A DNA stretch of 64,000 bases from Selaginella moellendorffii (GCF_000143415.4 NW_003314299.1:124001-188000); one strand, 5' to 3'; shown: positions 38,330 through 50,087, numbered from the stretch's first letter. Translations and numbers: made by a program. Notes: a model not told the origin generated them from the letters alone.

Positions 38330-39878
38330 AAATTCACTTGCACCACTTAGAAAATGGTAAGAAGCTCTAAAACCCTTTGCCATATTTGAAATAAATTTTA
38401 GTCTGGAATAAAAATATTCTAAATTCAATCAAATCAAATATGCAAACACTTTATAGAGAGATTTTGAGTAGATTTATTAATAAAATTCACAAAAAATTAA
38501 AATGATCAAGGCATTATAATCTCAAACTTTCAAAAACCATGTTATTTATGGCATGAAGGAAATTGTTTATATATTATGATCCAAAAGTAAAAATTTATCA
38601 TCTTTGTGATCAGCATGACAAAATCTATTAACCTAATATTAATATTGGATAATAAATAAAGAGCAAGAAAAGAAAAAATAACTGTCAATAAACATAATAC
38701 TTTAATTTTATCATTAAAACTTTATAATAATATTAAAATTTCCCAAAGAAATAATTGTTACTAATTAAATAATAAATTAAATTTTTAGAATAAATGCATA
38801 AGGATATAGTTATATAACATAGGTTTTGACAATTTTTGCTATTAAACTGTATTATGCCTGTTCTCACCACCCAACTAAAAGCTCCAGTATCATTAACCTT
38901 ATGTCCTTGCCTTTGACTTGTGTTAACCACGTATTAAAAACAAGTTAATGCCTAACAAATTTTGGTGTTAACAGAAAATGAGTTTTTTTTGTCTTCTTCA
39001 CCCACTTCAATGTTTATATATGATAAAGAATGAGCTTCTTACATCTTACTTACCTGAGCATGTCCTCACTTACACTACGACAAAAAATACCTAATGTATT
39101 TGAATAAATCCTTCACTTCATCAAGGTCAAACAAGAGAAAAAACAAATAAAAAAAGTTAAAAAACCCTTGTGTACATTGGTCCTATTATTCAAGTAGAGT
39201 TTACCGCTTAGAGGACAATTCTCTTCCATACGAATTAAATAGCCTTATCAAATTGACCTTTTAAAAAGGGACAAAAAGGAAGTAGTCAATAAGGAGAAAG
39301 GATAATAAAACATTTTAAGTTAAGTCATAAAAATAGCCCATTTCTTTCACGACCTGAATTATCCTGAATTAGTATTTTCTAACATTCTCTGTTTTTAGAG
39401 AGAGATAGAGGAGCTTAGTTGACATCTGGTCTTGTGATTGGAGTGTACCTCTTAACTGGTATGGTTTAGGGGAACTTGCAAGTGACACAGTAATCCTAAA
39501 AGTTGGGAAAGGTCTAGCTGGTACAAGGGAGAGCAGTTGAGGTAGTTGCGTGTTGATGATAACCCAGAATCAAGCATTGGTGCAACACGAGGCATGCAAT
39601 ACATAAACAGTTTTAAGGATGAATGAATGAATATGTATGGGATGTGTGATCGCAAAACAAATGCCCACCCATCTCAAAGCATCTCGTTTTGCATTAATTG
39701 GAAGTAAATTTTACGCAAGAACTCGGCCTAGGAGGGGGGGCCCATTCTTGCTTAGCCGCCCACTCCACTACATGTTATCTTGGGCTCTACCCTTCGCTCT
39801 TTTGACCACGGAGTCAAGTTTAGTCAATCTCTTTAAAAGTTTTGGACACGTTTTGCCCTAATTCTCTGTGCTAGAGAC

Positions 39879-41638
39879 ATGACGAAGGCGCCGCTCCTCG
39901 CCATTCTCTCGGCCGCATGCACCTTCTTCTCCGGATTCCAAAACGTTGTCATTTGTTCTTGGCTCCAGCCATTTCTCCTCTTGCATTTCTTCCACAAGTC
40001 AGCGATTTCGCGCAATTCTTGCTCATGGCGCTCCGCGGCGCTCACAATCCTCCTGGCGCTCCTCCTCCAGACCACCGCCGCGAGCCTGGCGTTCCTGGCA
40101 TTCTTCCCGGGAAAGGTGAGCCCGGACAGCTCCACGGCCAGCAGCGTGCCAATTGTGGGAATAATCTGGGCACTGGCGCTGTGGGTGTTTCTGCTCCTCC
40201 CATTTCTTGCAAGCATCGGCTACAGGAAGCGTTTTGATCGAGCAAGAACCTCCCAGCCGCTGGTATTCGCGTCGATCTGGACCACGGCGTGGTTCCTGTG
40301 GAACCGATTCGGCGGCGTCGGCGCCCTCCTCCATCCCGCCGTGTCGCAGGTAACAATCTTGCCCCTGGTGATGAGCGCGGGCGTGTGGGGGATGGACGGG
40401 ATCGCATTCCTCATGGCGTGGTTCTCGGCGATTCTCCACGACAGGGCCGTCCTCGACGAGTCTCTTCCCAAGATGGAGAAAACCGACAAGAAGCGTGCTA
40501 CGCAGCTGCATCGCGGCCACTCCCTGGCGTTTGGAGCCATTGCTCTCTCGATCTTGTTATACGGCAGCGCCAGGGTCTCCATTTTCTCGGGGGATTTCTT
40601 CCAGAAGGACATCGCCCTCACGATGAAGAAAACAGTGCCGGTTTCTTGCGTCCTGGGCAAGCTCCTCGTCTACGAGGACATGGATGTGATGCTCAACAGG
40701 ACGAGCCAGCGCCTCCGAGCCGGCGATCGGTTGGTGCTCTGGTCCGAGGCTGCGGTGAAACTCCACCTCAAACAGGAGAGGGATTCTCTCCAATTCAAAG
40801 CCGGACAGATCGCTTCCCAGCATGACGCCTACGTGGGCATCACTTACGAGTACAAGGACGCGAGCACCGGAAGAGTCGGGAACTATTTCGACCTCGTTCT
40901 TCCCGATGGCTCCATTGGTTTTAGCTACAGGAAAGCCCACTTGGTTCCATTCGCGGAGTCGTATGTCACTCCGGGGGATCCCATTCTTCCCGCCATCGAC
41001 ACCGAGCTCGGCCGGATTGGAGGAGCGATTTGCTTCGACTTCGAGTTTCCAGACCTGATGCGCCAGGCCGGGGAAAAGAGGTAGAGCAAACTTTCAGTAT
41101 GGTAGCCTAGAGTTCTAAGTGTTTGGTGGTGCTTTGGCAGGATTGATATCATGCTCCAACCAGCCGAGACTTGGGGAGCAACCGGCCCCCGGGTGAAAGA
41201 GGCCGATGCCTTCCGTGTCGTGGAGAACGGCTTTAGCTGGTTTCGATGCTCCACGGGAGGCGTTTCAGCCGTTGTCGATCCCTATCTCCAGACATTCGAC
41301 CACAGGTGCGACAGTGTTAGATCAATGTTCGGCTGTGATATTCTTTTGGTTTCCTTTTGCTTGACAGGGAAGGTATCTCCGACTCGGTCTTCGCCATGGC
41401 GCTCCCAATACTTGGGAAGGCGTGGACGCTTTATCCGAGCTATGGCTGCCTTTTCGCGTGGCTAGTGGCTGCGCTCGCTGCGGTACACGTCTCCATGCTC
41501 TGCCTCCCTCTTGGAGCAGTGATGTACATCCTTGACAAGTCCCCGCCCGCCTTTGTGTTTTACATCACTGGCGACCGATCATTCAAGGAGTTTGCACACT
41601 TGCACAATATTTTGCCAAACCACACACCCCGATACTAA
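39879..41638 (+). CDS. Membrane nitrilase-fold protein, apolipoprotein N-acyltransferase (Lnt)-like, copy 1, 3 exons
   Basis: Multiple N-terminal TM segments; triad motifs LWSEAA, YRKAHLVPFAES, AICFDFEFP; FRVVENGFSWFRCSTGGVSAVVDP; TLYPSYG followed by a C-terminal TM; two GT-AG introns. Confidence 0.85.
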
Positions 41639-42236
41639 ACTTAGTAAATACATATTGCATATAAATTTCATGATTATTACCACCTAAAATCATGGTTTTT
41701 TCATGAAAAAACTCCTCACTTCCTCTATAATTTTGTATAAGAAAAAAATCCACTTTCACTACTTGGAAAATGGTATGAAGTTCCAAAAACCTTTGCCACA
41801 CTTAAATAAATTTTAGTGTGGCAAATAAATTATGAGAACTCATTCTAAATTCAATTAAATCAAATATATAAACACTTTATAGAGAGATTTTGAGTGGATT
41901 TATTAATATAGCTCAAAAAAATTTAAAATGATCAAGGCATTATAATCTAAAACTTTTTAAAAAAGTTTTATTTATGGCATGAAGGAAATTGTTTATATAT
42001 TACAATCCAAAAGTAAAAATTTATCATCCTTGTAATCAAGGTGTAAAGCATGACAAAATCTATTAACCTAATATCAGTATTGAATAATAAATAAAGAGCA
42101 AGAAAAGAAAAAATAACTGTCAATAAAAAACAATACTTTACTTTTATCATCAAAACTTTATAATATACTTAAAATTTCCCAAAGAAATAATTGTTACTAA
42201 TTAAATAATAAACAAAAATGTTTAAAATAAATGCAT

Positions 42237-45200
42237 TTGGTCATACTTATCAGCGTTGTCAGTGTTTTTCAGATTGGTAAACTCCATTTCCTGGGTGGAG
42301 ACCTTGGCATCGGCAACGTTGTGTTAATGCTTCTGTAATGGAAGGTCTAGACACCGAGATGCATCCAGGAAATGAGGAGTCGCATAAGTAACAGAAGGAC
42401 CTTGTGCGAATAAGTCAGTGACCCCTCCATCTTTCTTCCGGGAGTATCATCAAGGGGTTCACTTGGCACCGGTTCATCCAGTGTTTACTTTCCAAACTCG
42501 TTTTTATAACAAGAGGTCTCTTATTATTTTCTTCATGTTGGTTGATATAGGTTTGAGTTTATCTTCTATTGCTTGACCTGTTGCCACACATTGCCGTCTA
42601 CACTTGCATCATGCGGCAGAACCAGTTTTCATTCTTTATGGCAACAGTCGTACACATGCATGTGCATGGGATGAGGCAGACCTAGTTGTCCATGTGGGCG
42701 ATCTTAAACTTGAGTTGCAGTCATTGCGGGTGGTGCTAAATCAAGCTTTTGACCTCATTTTTGGTATAGATTAGTTATAGTGCAATCATACCAAATGTAA
42801 TTTTAAGGTTTCTCCCTGTTATCTCATACTTCTTTATGTTTCATCCATTCCTCCCACTTCCGTACCTTTTCGTCCCTTTACTTCTACCTTTGCTTCCATT
42901 ACTTTTGTTCCCTTACTATTTTTTCCTATGTTTCTGTTTTGTTCTGCTTTTCCCATTTCCGATCCCTCTAACAATCTTTGTGTTGCAGCGGTTGACCAGC
43001 TCATGAAGGAGTATTCTAATCTCTTTAAATTTGACCTATCGTTCGGGGCCAAGATTGACATATGTCATCCAATTCCAACTAGGGATGCTCATCCAATCAA
43101 GGTTCCTATTCATTGTCAGTCACCCAAGGAGATCAAGATTTTATATGCAAACATCAAAGAGATGTTGGAAAAGGGTGTTATTCAGAAGTCGCGGAATCCT
43201 TAGGCATGTGAACCTCATCTTGTGACAAAGTCTAATGGGAGTATTTTTTTTTGCATCGACTATCGTCCGTTAAACAAAGTGACAATCCCATATGTGTACC
43301 CTTTCCTTCACACTGCTAATATCTTGGATTGTTTGGGGTGAAGTTGTTAGTTCACTAAGCTAAATCTTGCTTCTAAGTACTGGCAAGTACCGATGGCCAA
43401 AGAAAACATTCCTAAGACTGCTTTTTGTACACCATTTAGTTTGTACGAGTTCTTGCCATTTAGTTTAAACAATGCTCCAACAACTTTCCAGCAGATGATG
43501 GACGAAGTTCTTTGTGATATGCCAGAGGTGACTGTTGACTTCATTGATGATGTTTTGATCCACTCGAAGGGGAAATAGGAGGAGCATGTTCATGATGTTT
43601 GTAAAGTGTTGGATCAGCTATAGGATGTTGGTTTAAAGCTGAAGCGGTCGAAGTGTGTGTTTGGGTCTAAAGATATAATTTATCTTGGGTACTGTATTTT
43701 TCGTGAGGGTTTGCAAGTTGATCCTGTCAAACTTATAGCTGTTCTAAAATTCCTTACTCCGAAGTGTGTAAATGATGTGCAGCACTTCTTGGGCAAAGTG
43801 CAGTATCTCGATCGTTTTGTAGCACTGAGTGTTCCCTTCTTCTTCTTCCTCTCTTCCGTGAAGATCATCGCGTAAGTTCCCCTGTTTGCTTGCTCTAGAA
43901 CAACGATTCTTCCATCATCTTTCTGATCGCACTGCACCATTGCGAGTGTTGCTGAAGTCATCAACGTCATCTTTCATCTAGTCTCCAGATTGTGAGCAAG
44001 CGTTTATGGATCTTAAAAAGCTATTAACAACTCCAGTTTTGGCATATTTTGACTACACTTGACCTTTATTTTGCACGTGGATGCTTCTGACATTGGTCTT
44101 GGAAGTGTGTTGATGCAAGAGAGCTCAAGTGTGCCTGGTCAGTGCCATCCTATTGCATATATAAACTATACATTACAACCAGCGGAGATAGACTATTCCA
44201 TAATAGAGAAGGAGTGTTTAGTAGCAGTTTGGGGTTTCAAAAAACTTCATGCATATCTACATGGTTCTAGGACACTTGGCAAATAACTATTTCAATCTGA
44301 ATGGTGAAAGTTCACATACTTCGCAATCATCTCTTTGAATGTCCAAATGAGCCGTTTCACCAAACTATCTGATTGTGGATGATAAGCACTCGTGAAAGTG
44401 TGGCATATCCCCAACTGAGACATCAAAACATAAAATGCCTCAGCCATAAATGCGGGACCATTATCCGAAAGAATCCACTCTGGACAAGAATGTTGGAACA
44501 CCACTCGATTGAGGAGGAAGTATCCAACAACAGTTGCAAAGGTGCTAGCAAGAGCACTAATTTCCACCCAACGAGTCAAGTAGTCAAAAACAATAATAAC
44601 ATACTCATTTGTTAGCAGTGGACCATGGAAAAGGTCCCATAAGATCAAACACCACCAACTCAAATGGATGGAATACTGCAATGGACTATAATTGTCCTTT
44701 CGAGCTTTGTAGCATGGTCTAAAGCTTCAAAGCCCATTGAGCAGTATAACTAACCAGGTTCTTCCGCTTCAATAATGAAGTAATAGCAGCATGGTCACCT
44801 TCAAATCATAGGGGTGTAGAGTTCTATTGGTGCTTCACCATATAAAGCCTTATGTAGTTATAATCCAATATTACCAATGGAGCTGGGTTTACCTTTGCGA
44901 TTGCCACGAGCTGCCAATGCTAGGTCATGGGATCAATATTTGATGAGCATTCTTTCACTTGTCCAAGTAGAGTCTACCGAACACTTAGGCTGTGTACAAG
45001 TGGGACAACAATAGTGTTACAACTCCCATCATCATCCACCTGTGGAGTGCAAAGTGGATGATTTGATGTTAGTCTATTTTCCCTATCTTACGGTATGTGG
45101 TTTATCTAAGAGGCTCCTTGCACAGTGGAAAGGACTATATCAGGTGTTGTGGCAAGTTGGACCACAAGTTTATGAGGTTCAACATGATGTCCAATAAGCC

Positions 45201-45549
45201 AATCGTCCAGTGATTATACATGTGCAACAGTTGAAACGCTTCATACAAAGGGATCATGAGTAGTTAGTACCACCTACAGATCCACTGATGCCTCCTCCTG
45301 ACATTCCTCCAAATCCTAGCCCATTTACAAGAGAACTCTGATGGTCTTTCATTATTCCGAGAGGAAGGGATGATGTGAGGGCCAAGTGTATGGTTACGAT
45401 GCCGTATACTAATATTAGCATAATGGGATTTTAGTAGCTGTTAGATTGATTTCAATCCAGACCACTTGCTCCTGTAAACAAGCTAGGGTTTTTGGGCTAA
45501 TTGATATACACATTTTCTATATTCCCTTTTCACATTCCAAGCACTCACA
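42237..45549 (+). mobile_element. Degenerate Ty3/Gypsy LTR retrotransposon (PR-RT-RH-IN order), no visible 5' LTR
   Basis: Protease relic (LVDIGLS...FDLIFGID); RT CIDYRPLNK, KTAFCTP, PFSLNNAPTTFQ, FIDDVLIHS; RNase H HVDASDIGLGSVL...YSIIEKECL; integrase SDNGPAF...AYHPQSD; many stops; PPT gaggaaggga before the 3' LTR. Confidence 0.92.
45374..45549 (+). repeat. 3' LTR, 176 bp, TGTGAG...CTCACA
   Basis: 6-bp terminal inverted repeat, preceded by a polypurine tract; related copies at ~2362 and ~7084. Confidence 0.88.
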
Positions 45550-46655
45550 ATAGGTTTAGACAATTTTTATTAGGTACTAACTTAAACTATATTATGCCTA
45601 TTTCTCATCACCTAACTAAAAACTCCATTGTGTTATTGTATCATTAACCTTATGTCCTTGCCTTTGACTTGTGTTGACATGTCTTTAACCATTTTTGTTG
45701 TTTAACAAAAAATGAGTTTTTTTTTCTTCTTCACCCACTTCAATGTTTTTCTACAATATATATTCAATATGATTACCTATGATAAAGAATCAGCTTCTTA
45801 CAGCTGACATACCTAAGCATGTCCTCACCTGCACTACGACAAAAAACACTCAATGTATTTGAATAAATCCTTCACTTCATCAAGGTCAAACAAGAGAAAA
45901 ACAAAAAAAAAATTTAAAAAATAACCCTGTGTACATTGGTCCTATTGTTCAAGTGGGAGTTTACTGCTCGGAGGATAATTCTCTTCCATACGAATTAAAT
46001 AGCCTTATGCATCAGTTTATCAATTGACCTTTTAAAAAGGGACAAAAAGGAAGTAGATCTGATAAACCATCCATTTCTTTCACATGACCTGAATTAGATC
46101 CTGAATTAGTATTTTCTAACATTCTCTGTTTTTAGAGAAAGAGAGAGGAGCTTAGTTGACATCTGGTCTTCTGATTAACTGTCTTGTTTGGAATGTCCCT
46201 CTTAACTGGTATGGTTTAGGGGAATTTGCAAGTGGTTATGGAAACACAGTAGTCCTAAAAGTTGGGAAAGGTATTGAGAATCTAGCTGGTACAAGGGAGA
46301 GCAGTTGAGGTAGTTGCGTGTTGATGACAACCCCGAATCAACCATTGGTGCAACACGAGACACACAATACATAAACAGTTTTAAGGATGAATGAATGAAT
46401 ATGTGTGGGATGTGTGATCGCAAAACAAATGCCCACCCATCAAATGCCATCTCAAAGCATCTGGTTTTGCATTAATTGGAAGTAAATTTTACGCAAGAAC
46501 TGGGCCTAGGAGGGGGGTGGATGCGGCCCCATTCTTGCTTAGCCGCCCACTCCACTAGAGCTCTACCCTTCGCTCTTTTGACCACAGTCAGAATCTCTTT
46601 AAAAGCTTTGGACACCGTTTTGCCCTAAATTCTGAAGATTCTTTCTGCCAGAGAC

Positions 46656-48409
46656 ATGACGAAGGCGTTGCACCTCGCCATTCTCTCGGCCGCATGCACC
46701 TTCTTCTCCGGATTCCAAAACGTTGCCATTTGTTCTTGGCTCCAGCCATTTCTCCTCTTGCATTTCTTCCTCAAGTCAGGGATTTCGCGCAATTCTTGCT
46801 CATGGCGCTCCGCGGCGCTCACAATCCTCCTGGCGCTCCTCCTCCAGACCATCGCCGCGAGCCTGGCGTTCCTGGCATTGTTCCCGGGAAAGGTGAGCCC
46901 GGACAGCTCCACGGCCAGCAGCGTGCCAATTGTGGGAATAATCTGGGCACTGGCGCTGTGGGTGTTTCTGCTCCTCCCATTTCTTGCAAGCATCGGCTAC
47001 AGGAAGCGTTTTGATCGAGCAAAAACGTCCCAGCCGCTGGTATTCGCGTCGATCTGGACCACGGCGTGGTTCCTGTGGAATCGATTCGGCGGCGTCGGCG
47101 CCCTCCTCCATCCCGCCGTGTCGCAGGTGACAATCTTGCCTCTGGTGATGAGCGCCGGCGTGTGGGGGATGGATGGGATCGCATTCCTCATGGCGTGGTT
47201 CTCGGCGATTCTCCACGACAGGACCGTTCTCGACGAGTCTCTTCCCAAGATGGAGAAATCCGACAAGAAGCGTGCTACGCAGCTGCATCGCGGCCACTCC
47301 CTGGCGTTTGGAGCCATTGCCCTCTCGACCTTGTTCTACGGCAGCGCCAGGGTCTCGGTCTTCTCGGGCGATTTCTTCCAGAAGGACATCGCCCTCACGA
47401 TGAAGAAAACAGTGCCGGTCTCTTGCGTCCTGGGCAAGCTCCTCGTCTACGAGGACATGGATGTGATGCTCAACCGGACGAACCAGCGCCTCCGAGCCGG
47501 CGATCGGTTGGTGCTCTGGTCCGAGGCTGCGGTGAAACTCCACCTCAAACAGGAGAGGGATTCTCTCCAATTCAAAGCCGGACAGATCGCTTCCCAGCAT
47601 GGCGCCTACGTTGGCATCACTTACGAGTACAACGACGCGAGCACTGGAAGAGTCGGGAACTATTTCGACCTCGTTCTTCCCGATGGCTCCATTGGTTTTA
47701 GCTACAGGAAAGCCCACTTGGTTCCATTCGCGGAGTCGTATGTCACTCCGGGGGATCCCATTCTTCCCGCCATCGACACCGAGCTCGGCCGGATTGGAGG
47801 AGCGATTTGCTTCGACTTCGAGTTTCCAGACCTGATGCGCCAGGCCGGGGAAAAGAGGTAGAGCAAACTTTCAGTATGGTAGCCTAGAGTTCTAAGTGTT
47901 TGGTGGTGCTTTGGCAGGATTGATATCATGCTCCAACCAGCCGAGACTTGGGGAGCAACCGGCCCCCGGGTGAAAGAGGCCGATGCCTTCCGTGTCGTGG
48001 AGAACGGCTTTAGCTGGTTTCGATGCTCCACGGGAGGCGTTTCAGCCGTTGTCGATCCCTATCTCCAGACATTCGACCACAGGTGCGACAGTGTTAGATC
48101 AATGTTCGGCTGTGATATTCTTTTGGTTTCCTTTTGCTTGACAGGGAAGGTATCTCCGACTCGGTCTTTGCCATGGCGCTCCCAATACTTGGGAAGGCGT
48201 GGACGCTTTATCCGAGCTATGGCTGCCTTTTCGCGTGGCTAGTGGCTGCGCTCGCTGCGGTACACGTCTCCATGCTCTGCCTCCCTCTTGGAGCAGTGAT
48301 GTACATCCTTGACAAGTCCCCGCCCGCCTTTGTGTTTTACATCACTGGCGACCGATCATTCAAGGAGTTTGAGAAGTCGGAGCTAAGTTGCGTGCTGCTG
48401 GCGGAGTGA
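46656..48409 (+). CDS. Lnt-like membrane nitrilase-fold protein, copy 2, 3 exons
   Basis: Near-identical paralogue of 39879-41638 with E-K-C motifs intact; probably retains the original C-terminus (KEFEKSELSCVLLAE). Confidence 0.85.
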
Positions 48410-48644: not shown

Positions 48645-50087
48645 TTAGGCCAGATCTTTGGAGGGATTCAAGGCCCCAGAGAGCAACACGTAGGCGTTGG
48701 ATCGCGTCGGCTGGAGCGTCACGGAATGCTGCGCTGCCAAGCGCGCTGGCTCGTTGCTGGCGTGAACTGAACTCGCTGACAAAAGCGTCATCCATGCTGT
48801 GGATTCGGGGCGGAATGGCATGTTGGAGACGAGCTCCTGGGCTTGCTTGAGCTCGCCGGAGCGACCCAAAACATCGATCAGGCAGTGGTAGTGCTCGGGC
48901 AGCGGGGGGATTTCCCAGTCCCTGGTCATGGTCGAGAAGTATTTCTTCCCTCGGTCCAGGAGCCCCACTCGGCTGCACGCCGCCAAGACGCTCACGAAGC
49001 TCAGGGCGTTGGGTTTGATGCCTTCCATCTCCATCGCTCCGAAGAGCTCGAGAGTTTCGTGCCAGTAGCCATTCTGGGTGTTGCCTTGGAGCATTGTGTT
49101 CCAGGTGACTACGTCCTTCTCGGGTATGGAATCGAAGAGAAGCTTTGCTTCTTCCATCCGGCAAATGTGAGCAAAGGCTTGGAGTGCTGACGTCCACGAA
49201 AGGTGGTCTCGCACTGGCATGGATTCGAACAAGGTCAGGGCTTGTTCCAAATGCCCGTTTTGGGCATATGCCGAAAGCATAGCGTTCCACAAGATAAGAT
49301 CCGCATAGGGCATGCTGTTAAACACTTCTCTAGCTTCTGAAATACTGCCACTATTTGTAAGAATTTCTATCATTACTGTGCTTGCAATGACGTCCTTTTC
49401 TGGCATTCTATGGAAGATTACCTTTGCTTCGTTGCAATGCCCGGATTTGCCATAAGCAGCTATCATCGCCGTCCAGCAAGTTATGCCGTCGTCCGGCAAT
49501 CTATCAAACATAGATCGCGCCTCTTCTAGTTTTCCATGCGATGCGTATGCAGCGATCATACAGTTCCATAGAACGCTGCTGTGTTCTGGAATACCGTTGA
49601 AGAGTGAACTTGCCGTGTCAAGATGCCCGTTTTGAGCATATGCTGTAACCATGGCATTCCAGGAAACTATGTGTTTTTCAGGCATAGAATCAAACACTTT
49701 CCTAGCCATCGTAATATTTCCTGCTTGTGAGTATGCTGTGACCATTGTGGTCCATGAAATGACGTCTCTCTGTGGCATTTTTTCGAACAGACAGCACGCT
49801 TCCTCTAGGTGCCCATTTGAGGCAAATGCTGAGATCATTATATTCCATGAGAAAATGTTGGGATAGAGTATGGCGTCAAACACTCTTTTTGCATCTTGGG
49901 CGCTGCCGCACTTTCCATACATCTCGATCAGAAGGTTCGCAAGGTATCTGTCTGATTGATGTTGCTCAGATCCCAGGATCTGAGAGTGGACCTCCTTTGC
50001 GCGGGATAAATCGCTGAAACCTCCAACGGATCTGATAAACTGTACGTAGAAGCTGCGTTGTAGACACATAGAATGTATGAAATACAA
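48645..50087 (-). CDS. PLS-class PPR protein (S/SS-rich) with E domain and no DYW
   Basis: Repeated ~31-aa units (MPQRDVISWTTMVTAYSQAG...); E-domain PEHYHCLIDVLGRSG...MPFRP...AYVLLS. True start codon uncertain. Confidence 0.88.
   Translation of the reverse strand: MYFIHSMCLQRSFYVQFIRSVGGFSDLSRAKEVHSQILGSEQHQSDRYLANLLIEMYGKCGSAQDAKRVFDAILYPNIFSWNIMISAFASNGHLEEACCLFEKMPQRDVISWTTMVTAYSQAGNITMARKVFDSMPEKHIVSWNAMVTAYAQNGHLDTASSLFNGIPEHSSVLWNCMIAAYASHGKLEEARSMFDRLPDDGITCWTAMIAAYGKSGHCNEAKVIFHRMPEKDVIASTVMIEILTNSGSISEAREVFNSMPYADLILWNAMLSAYAQNGHLEQALTLFESMPVRDHLSWTSALQAFAHICRMEEAKLLFDSIPEKDVVTWNTMLQGNTQNGYWHETLELFGAMEMEGIKPNALSFVSVLAACSRVGLLDRGKKYFSTMTRDWEIPPLPEHYHCLIDVLGRSGELKQAQELVSNMPFRPESTAWMTLLSASSVHASNEPARLAAQHSVTLQPTRSNAYVLLSGALNPSKDLA

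Follow-up and report, generated by a model that had tools for sequence, protein, structure and literature searches.

Lnt is usually treated as a bacterial envelope enzyme and as an antibiotic target. It takes up the sn-1 chain of a phospholipid as an acyl-thioester on its catalytic cysteine and then transfers this chain to an amine (PMC5500888), and AatD, an Lnt-fold paralogue with a Glu-Lys-Cys triad, is needed to acylate Aap in the Aat system of enteroaggregative E. coli (PMC7478709). Both of these papers describe Lnt in bacteria alone, and full-text literature searching found no published study of a eukaryotic Lnt-like protein. Our study showed that a 64,000-nucleotide stretch of nuclear DNA from the lycophyte Selaginella moellendorffii (GCF_000143415.4 NW_003314299.1:124001-188000, referred to below as the window, with positions counted from its first letter) carries two intact three-exon genes in tandem, both on the + strand: copy A (39879-41638, 545 aa) and copy B (46656-48409, 543 aa). 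On balance, we favour the view that they are tandem duplicates of a nuclear gene inherited within the green lineage, and that this gene encodes an Lnt-type membrane thiol enzyme, a probable phospholipid-dependent N-acyltransferase. Databases label members of the family as 'uncharacterized' or 'CN hydrolase domain-containing'.

Fold, active site and topology

The copy A protein (P0001) matches Pfam CN_hydrolase (PF00795) at 45.2 bits against a cutoff of 23.2 (E 9.7e-12), and the best NCBIfam model for it is TIGR00546 lnt (E 1e-18). A profile made from 17 family members had the solved Lnt sequences as its top match (E 2.5e-13). A previous examination of this DNA, the sequence-only reading, had proposed that both copies possess the full Lnt architecture with an intact Glu-Lys-Cys triad, and our analysis confirms this. 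All the motifs it quoted are present in P0001, namely SQ..LPL..AGVWGMDGIAFL (residues 156-177), WSE (288-290), YRKAHLVPFAE (350-360), ICFD (384-387), RVVENG (426-431), RCSTGGVSAVVDP (436-448) and TLY (476-478), the last leading into the final helix.

Six to eight hydrophobic helices are predicted in the copy A protein. An AlphaFold model built on the alignment of the 17 members (predicted local distance difference test, pLDDT, 85.6; predicted template modelling score, pTM, 0.87) has seven long N-terminal helices, an alpha-beta-beta-alpha nitrilase domain at about 250-475 and a final helix at 478-501. The 24 best Foldseek matches of this model in the PDB are all Lnt, over about 540 aligned columns (E 5e-17). 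VIA-align places model residues 1-503 on chain residues 6-508 of E. coli Lnt, with a Z of 29.3 and a root-mean-square deviation of 3.4 A over 457 residues; soluble nitrilases cover only about residues 248-495, with Z values of at most 24.5. In a MAFFT alignment, E267, K335, C387, E343, W415 and E435 of E. coli Lnt correspond to E290, K352, C385, E360, W412 and E429 of the Selaginella protein, and these positions (the triad, the second Glu, the Trp and E429) are conserved across the family. The membrane domain of Lnt is likewise complete in all eukaryotic members.

The loops that would be cytosolic under the Lnt topology (around 39-52, 113-127 and 186-215) contain nearly all the Lys and Arg residues, and the opposite loops have almost none, a distribution that points to a catalytic domain on the luminal or outer side of the membrane. 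With its predicted fold matched end to end, the protein encoded by copies A and B is, in the model, a polytopic membrane thiol enzyme of the Lnt type.

Departures from true Lnt

P0001 reaches 67.7 bits with TIGR00546, whose cutoff is 132.9, and the other eukaryotic members score 38-75 bits. With Pfam LNT_N (PF20154), the two copies score 13.5-13.9 bits against a cutoff of 27.1, and full-length P0001 has no match at E <=0.01; the Mortierella member clears this model at 28.1 bits. Trp237, the lid loop after Glu343, Tyr388 and Glu389 matter for Lnt function. By sequence alignment only, Trp237 and positions 352 and 357 of E. coli Lnt fall opposite gaps in the Selaginella protein, and Tyr388 and Glu389 are replaced by Phe and Asp. 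The stretch between the second Glu and the Cys (E360-C385) measures 25 residues versus 44 in E. coli Lnt, so that the lid loop is about 19 residues shorter. In addition, a branch with 100/100 support separates E. coli Lnt and its kin from the clade that contains the eukaryotes. Given the sub-cutoff TIGR00546 score, the missing Trp237 and lid loop, the two substitutions and this split in the tree, the Selaginella protein would not, on sequence grounds, qualify as a true Lnt.

A feature of the eukaryotic branch itself is a pair of cysteines, Cys257 and Cys437, found in all eukaryote rows that are not gapped there and in 0 of the 17 bacterial rows. A disulfide between the two residues is conceivable and would be in keeping with a luminal domain.

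Distribution and inheritance in the green lineage

Of 1.84 billion cluster representatives searched exhaustively with HMMER, 3349 matched, 101 of them below 1e-30. The green members were Closterium (three strains), Sphagnum (four species) and Chromochloris, to which a search with the Sphagnum protein added the liverwort Calypogeia fissa, Spirogloea, Klebsormidium nitens and Volvox carteri. Fungal members came from Dichotomocladium, Gilbertella, Basidiobolus, Mortierella and Paraglomus, and other eukaryotic ones from Paulinella, Balamuthia and the marine-protist (MMETSP) transcriptomes. One further clade comes from a green alga, since its contig carries SBP-box and Senescence-domain genes. Feature and shape searches of the ESM Atlas returned chiefly bacterial Lnt-like clusters and one Basidiomycota cluster, with no functional lead; the Basidiomycota cluster is a look-alike by language-model features and not an aligned member.

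Two of the green database entries deserve a comment of their own. The Klebsormidium nitens orthologue (P0210) is labelled 'Fibrillarin and related nucleolar RNA-binding proteins', and the Spirogloea model (P0209) is fused to aspartate/ornithine carbamoyltransferase domains; both the name and the fusion look like annotation or gene-model errors.

The nearest named bacteria carry an Lnt-like subfamily of their own and belong to soil Actinomycetota, Acidobacteriota, Verrucomicrobiota, Ktedonobacteraceae (Chloroflexota) and Myxococcota. This soil-bacterial subfamily apparently has no described function. Its neighbours in 80 bacterial loci are most often regulators, with TetR in 12 and LuxR-type in 11, followed by LacI, AraC and response regulators.

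The phylogeny was built with IQ-TREE under LG+C20 with posterior mean site frequencies (PMSF) from 46 rows and rooted on canonical Lnt. The eukaryotes are monophyletic in it (100/99), as are the Viridiplantae (98/97), which divide into chlorophytes (93/78) and streptophytes (95/91), the latter made up of Selaginella, Sphagnum with Calypogeia (98/96), Klebsormidium, Spirogloea and Closterium. The other trees that we built agree with this one. Approximately unbiased (AU) tests reject both a grouping of Selaginella with the fungi (p 0.0028) and its placement outside the other eukaryotes (p 0.0048).

Gene structure tells the same story. Both Selaginella introns coincide, in codon position and in phase 2, with the last two introns of a Sphagnum gene (contig L002). 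The first shared intron splits the GG|A or AG|G codon that precedes [IV]-D-I-M, and the second the AG|G Arg codon that precedes E-[GA]. The Sphagnum-type gene itself lies on a metagenome contig (ENA ERZ12293692, L002 10001-13518) and has four introns; a prokaryotic gene caller had cut it into separate 'proteins' (P0005, P0184 and others). Its presence on ERZ12293692 indicates that these metagenome assemblies contain Sphagnum DNA.

Trees consistent with the species tree, the AU tests and the introns in common with Sphagnum together show vertical inheritance within the green lineage, reaching back at least to the ancestor that chlorophytes and streptophytes have in common. In the trees, the eukaryotic clade nests within bacterial Lnt-like proteins, and it is likely that the eukaryotic family as a whole arose from bacteria at a much earlier date. 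No seed-plant sequence was among the matches, which suggests a loss from seed plants.

Gene models, tandem duplication and transcripts

Our hand-built splice model of copy A translates to a protein identical to that of NCBI LOC112349392, and the 401-codon open reading frame at 39879 has 100% identity to it. Codons 1-400 and two bases of the next codon make up exon 1 (39879-41080), in which the membrane domain with its seven helices and the beginning of the nitrilase domain are encoded. This exon matches both TIGR00546 and CN_hydrolase, and contains the catalytic codons for Glu290 (40746-40748), Lys352 (40932-40934) and Cys385 (41031-41033). It is followed by intron 1 (41081-41140, 60 nt), exon 2 (41141-41305), which has the C-terminal TIGR00546 match and in which Trp412, the RVVENG motif and Cys437 of the nitrilase domain are encoded, intron 2 (41306-41367, 62 nt) and exon 3 (41368-41638), which completes the nitrilase domain and adds the TLY motif, the final transmembrane helix, the C-terminal tail and the stop codon. 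Each intron has GT..AG ends and splits an Arg codon in phase 2.

Copy B follows 6777 nt further downstream, is 97% identical to copy A and has an intact reading frame with GT..AG at the same places. Alignment to copy A and the splice model, together with the open reading frame and its translation for exon 1, give exon 1 at 46656-47857, intron 1 at 47858-47917 (identical in sequence to the copy A intron), exon 2 at 47918-48082, intron 2 at 48083-48144 and exon 3 at 48145-48409, which ends in a C-terminal tail and stop codon of its own. Between the copies, 31 codons are changed, 16 of them non-synonymously and 15 synonymously, giving a ratio of non-synonymous to synonymous rates (dN/dS) of 0.31, and both are thus under purifying selection.

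The duplication extends from at least 870 nt before the start codon to 41593/48370. The upstream part of the duplicated unit, which includes a short 5' untranslated region, occupies 39010-39878 on the + strand before copy A and 45769-46655 before copy B, and contains the direct repeats D1, D3 and D4 (spacing 6759-6777 nt, 87-96% identity). From 41594 onward, the sequence is found in copy A alone: past this breakpoint copy A enters AT-rich sequence and acquires a different 14-residue tail. The copy B type of tail is the one seen in the transcript contigs and in a paralogue (P0002, 91% identical) elsewhere in the Selaginella moellendorffii genome.

The divergence between the copies is unevenly spread. 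About 740 nt at the 3' end, both introns included, differ by one base (40855-41593 versus 47632-48370), and the 5' part is about 3% divergent, with 16 of the 16 amino-acid changes falling within codons 1-326. Such an uneven spread is suggestive of gene conversion or of a duplication that was staggered in time. By tblastn, there is no third copy within the window. A third paralogue, LOC112349345 (P0003, 373 aa), is located outside the window on the same 1.75 Mb contig; it is truncated, its ends look frameshifted, and a pseudogene or a poor gene model is the probable explanation.

Contigs assembled from four sequencing runs of four studies omit exactly 60 and 62 nt with GT..AG ends, and their coverage is confined to 39861-41594. 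Contigs that lack the introns and are restricted to the gene point to an mRNA-like origin. In all four runs, loose contig ends at 41594 run on into the copy-B-type tail, with a consensus equal to the copy B sequence after 48370, so that copy B or the P0002 locus is certainly represented among the contigs. Copy A is probably represented as well: one contig of run X2 shows 2 mismatches to its exon 1 over 214 nt, a stretch in which the copies themselves have 7 differences.

Neighbouring DNA

The spacer between the copies includes a region (41842-44681) of AT-rich repeat and decayed Ty3/gypsy-type retroelement fragments. A reverse transcriptase fragment (43393-43578, Pfam RVT_1) and an RNase H fragment (44059-44286, Pfam RT_RNaseH) lie on the + strand, and an integrase fragment (44292-44681, Pfam rve) on the - strand; the element (42928-44681) must therefore have been rearranged. 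An AT-rich repeat of 197 nt, D2, occurs on both sides of copy A (38416-38612 and 41842-42038, 90% identical) and has a small conserved open reading frame on the minus strand. This repeat may be part of an element that mediated or followed the duplication. Downstream of copy B, and tail-to-tail with it, is an intronless gene for a PPR protein of 480 aa (48645-50087, - strand, Pfam PPR E 1e-81), whose stop end is about 236 nt from the copy B stop codon.

Proposed function and alternative explanations

Retention of the membrane domain and of the active site makes a lipid-facing thiol acyl-enzyme mechanism our best guess for this family. The protein would span the membrane with seven helices, expose its nitrilase-fold domain on the non-cytosolic side, i.e. 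to a lumen or the cell exterior, and return to the membrane with an eighth helix. By analogy with Lnt, an acyl chain would probably be taken from a membrane glycerophospholipid to form a thioester on Cys385, and would then be handed on to the amine of an acceptor associated with the membrane on its luminal or outer side. Since Trp237 and about 19 residues of the lid loop are missing, this acceptor is probably something other than the diacylglyceryl-cysteine lipoprotein of the bacterial type. Nor are fungi and amoebae known to possess the Lgt/LspA pathway, by which bacterial-type lipoproteins are made.

Several points weigh against the reading of these genes as a vertically inherited, phospholipid-dependent N-acyltransferase. 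As regards function, the nitrilase fold also supports hydrolysis, so that the enzyme could be an amidase, and the 80 bacterial loci contain no conserved partner enzyme beside the bacterial relatives and hence give no functional clue. As regards descent, Selaginella has a long branch (0.99) and diverges at the base of the streptophytes, not beside the bryophytes; no seed-plant member was found among the matches, and no search was aimed at seed-plant genomes. The backbone of the non-green eukaryotes is a polytomy of fungi, Balamuthia, Paulinella and MMETSP sequences in which the fungi are not monophyletic, and on this tree a single ancient acquisition followed by losses cannot be told apart from transfers between eukaryotes. 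As regards expression, the RNA nature of the sequencing runs used for splicing was only guessed and their contigs give no expression levels. Contig depth over copy A's own 3' tail is zero beyond 41605 in the four runs, and copy A may be weakly expressed or not expressed at all.

Of the other explanations, the one that survives best concerns the wider history of the family. It is quite possible, though we doubt it, that the gene moved several times between eukaryotes, for example among soil fungi, amoebae and algae, and that only the green part of the tree is vertical. The polytomy and the non-monophyly of the fungi speak for it, and many members come from soil or freshwater organisms. A single entry, on the other hand, is in keeping with the one well-supported eukaryote clade and with a Cys pair that is absent from bacteria, and poor resolution is in itself no evidence of transfer.

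The main rival as regards function, which we consider unlikely but worth taking seriously, is that the protein has the same family and descent and acts as a membrane-bound amidase or deacylase, cleaving an N-acyl amide (in an N-acyl lipid or a lipopeptide) at the membrane surface. Most branches of the nitrilase superfamily are hydrolases, and soluble amidases are the next-best structural matches of our model (Z up to 24.5). The lid loop and Trp237 that have no counterpart here serve the second, transfer step of Lnt, and some bacterial relatives stand beside a TetR-type regulator of the sort often seen with inducible degradative genes. Against this, all eukaryotic members have kept the whole Lnt membrane domain, which delivers the lipid substrate in Lnt, the equivalents of E. 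coli E343 and Trp415 are conserved, and the characterised enzymes of such architecture, Lnt and AatD, are both described as N-acyltransferases.

The sequence-only reading had explained the genes by horizontal acquisition from bacteria or fungi. A recent transfer from either source into Selaginella or the lycophytes, with introns gained later, now appears very improbable. The fold is otherwise known from bacteria, the first named matches besides Selaginella's own are Mucoromycota fungi, and the distribution is patchy, with no seed-plant member seen among the matches. These observations have to be set against orthologues in Sphagnum, Calypogeia, Klebsormidium, Spirogloea, Closterium, Volvox and Chromochloris, the well-supported green and streptophyte clades, the rejection by the AU test of a position either with fungi or outside the other eukaryotes, and two introns that match those of Sphagnum in position and phase. 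The trees, the AU tests and the intron match thus refute a lycophyte-specific transfer. That orthologues would follow the green species tree had been named beforehand as the outcome that would speak against acquisition; they come close to doing so, in that they form a green clade, and fall short of it in their patchiness and in the lack of a seed-plant member among those seen. A bacterial-looking gene and a patchy distribution in plants do not by themselves prove horizontal transfer; here, it was the intron positions in common that decided.

An artefact, either bacterial contamination of the assembly or a decaying pair of pseudogenes, has next to no probability: the truncated and apparently frameshifted model LOC112349345 on the same contig and the replacement of the copy A tail at the duplication breakpoint could be read in this way, but spliceosomal GT..AG introns are skipped in the transcript contigs and the flanks are a PPR gene and a plant retroelement, which bears out what the sequence-only reading had argued from introns and plant neighbours, both frames are intact with a dN/dS of 0.31, the catalytic residues are conserved, and NCBI annotates the gene in S. 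moellendorffii.

If the reading as an inherited N-acyltransferase is extended to the whole family, a broader scenario can be sketched, which we put forward tentatively and as one that may well prove wrong. Eukaryotes would have an ancient and hitherto unnoticed lipidation system of the Lnt type, in which a luminal or extracellular enzyme uses phospholipid rather than acyl-CoA to N-acylate a secreted protein or an amine-bearing lipid, and this system would have disappeared from seed plants but persisted in green algae, bryophytes and lycophytes, in early-diverging fungi and basidiomycetes, and in amoebae and rhizarians.

Whatever the reaction, a complete enzyme of the Lnt type occurs as an inherited nuclear gene of green plants, within a family that extends across several eukaryotic supergroups. 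Once its acceptor is identified, the enzyme should turn out to perform a lipid modification new to eukaryotes or to be a new kind of membrane amidase. A moss, a liverwort and a lycophyte have kept the gene and seed plants apparently have not, which offers a case of gene loss in land-plant evolution. Newly described here are the match in introns, the Cys pair, the layout of the tandem duplication and the liverwort, Klebsormidium, Spirogloea and Volvox members.

Comparison with known systems

Soluble enzymes of the nitrilase superfamily are already known from plants, for example the N-carbamoylputrescine amidohydrolase of Medicago (5H8I) and the Nit2-type omega-amidases. They have the alpha-beta-beta-alpha domain and the triad in common with the Selaginella protein, but match only residues of about 248-491 and lack the membrane domain.

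The bacterial Lnt-like subfamily, represented for instance by Streptomonospora (L004) and Terriglobales (L042), is about 30% identical to the Selaginella protein and resembles it in the shortened lid region and in the C-x-D motif. It likewise falls under the equivalog cutoff of TIGR00546, at 98-125 bits. Unlike the Selaginella protein, it clears Pfam LNT_N, and it does not have the Cys257/Cys437 pair.

The same fold over about 500 residues is seen in Lnt of E. coli and P. aeruginosa (PDB 5N6H, 5N6M and 8B0K), which constitutes branch 9 of the nitrilase superfamily. The order of seven helices, nitrilase domain and last helix is identical, and the distribution of charges predicts the same topology; the Selaginella protein, however, is only 15-18% identical to these enzymes and its host is a eukaryote. 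AatD provides a precedent for reuse of the Lnt fold on one dedicated secreted acceptor, but it is limited to the Enterobacterales and encoded in an operon with its own export system, unlike the eukaryotic genes.

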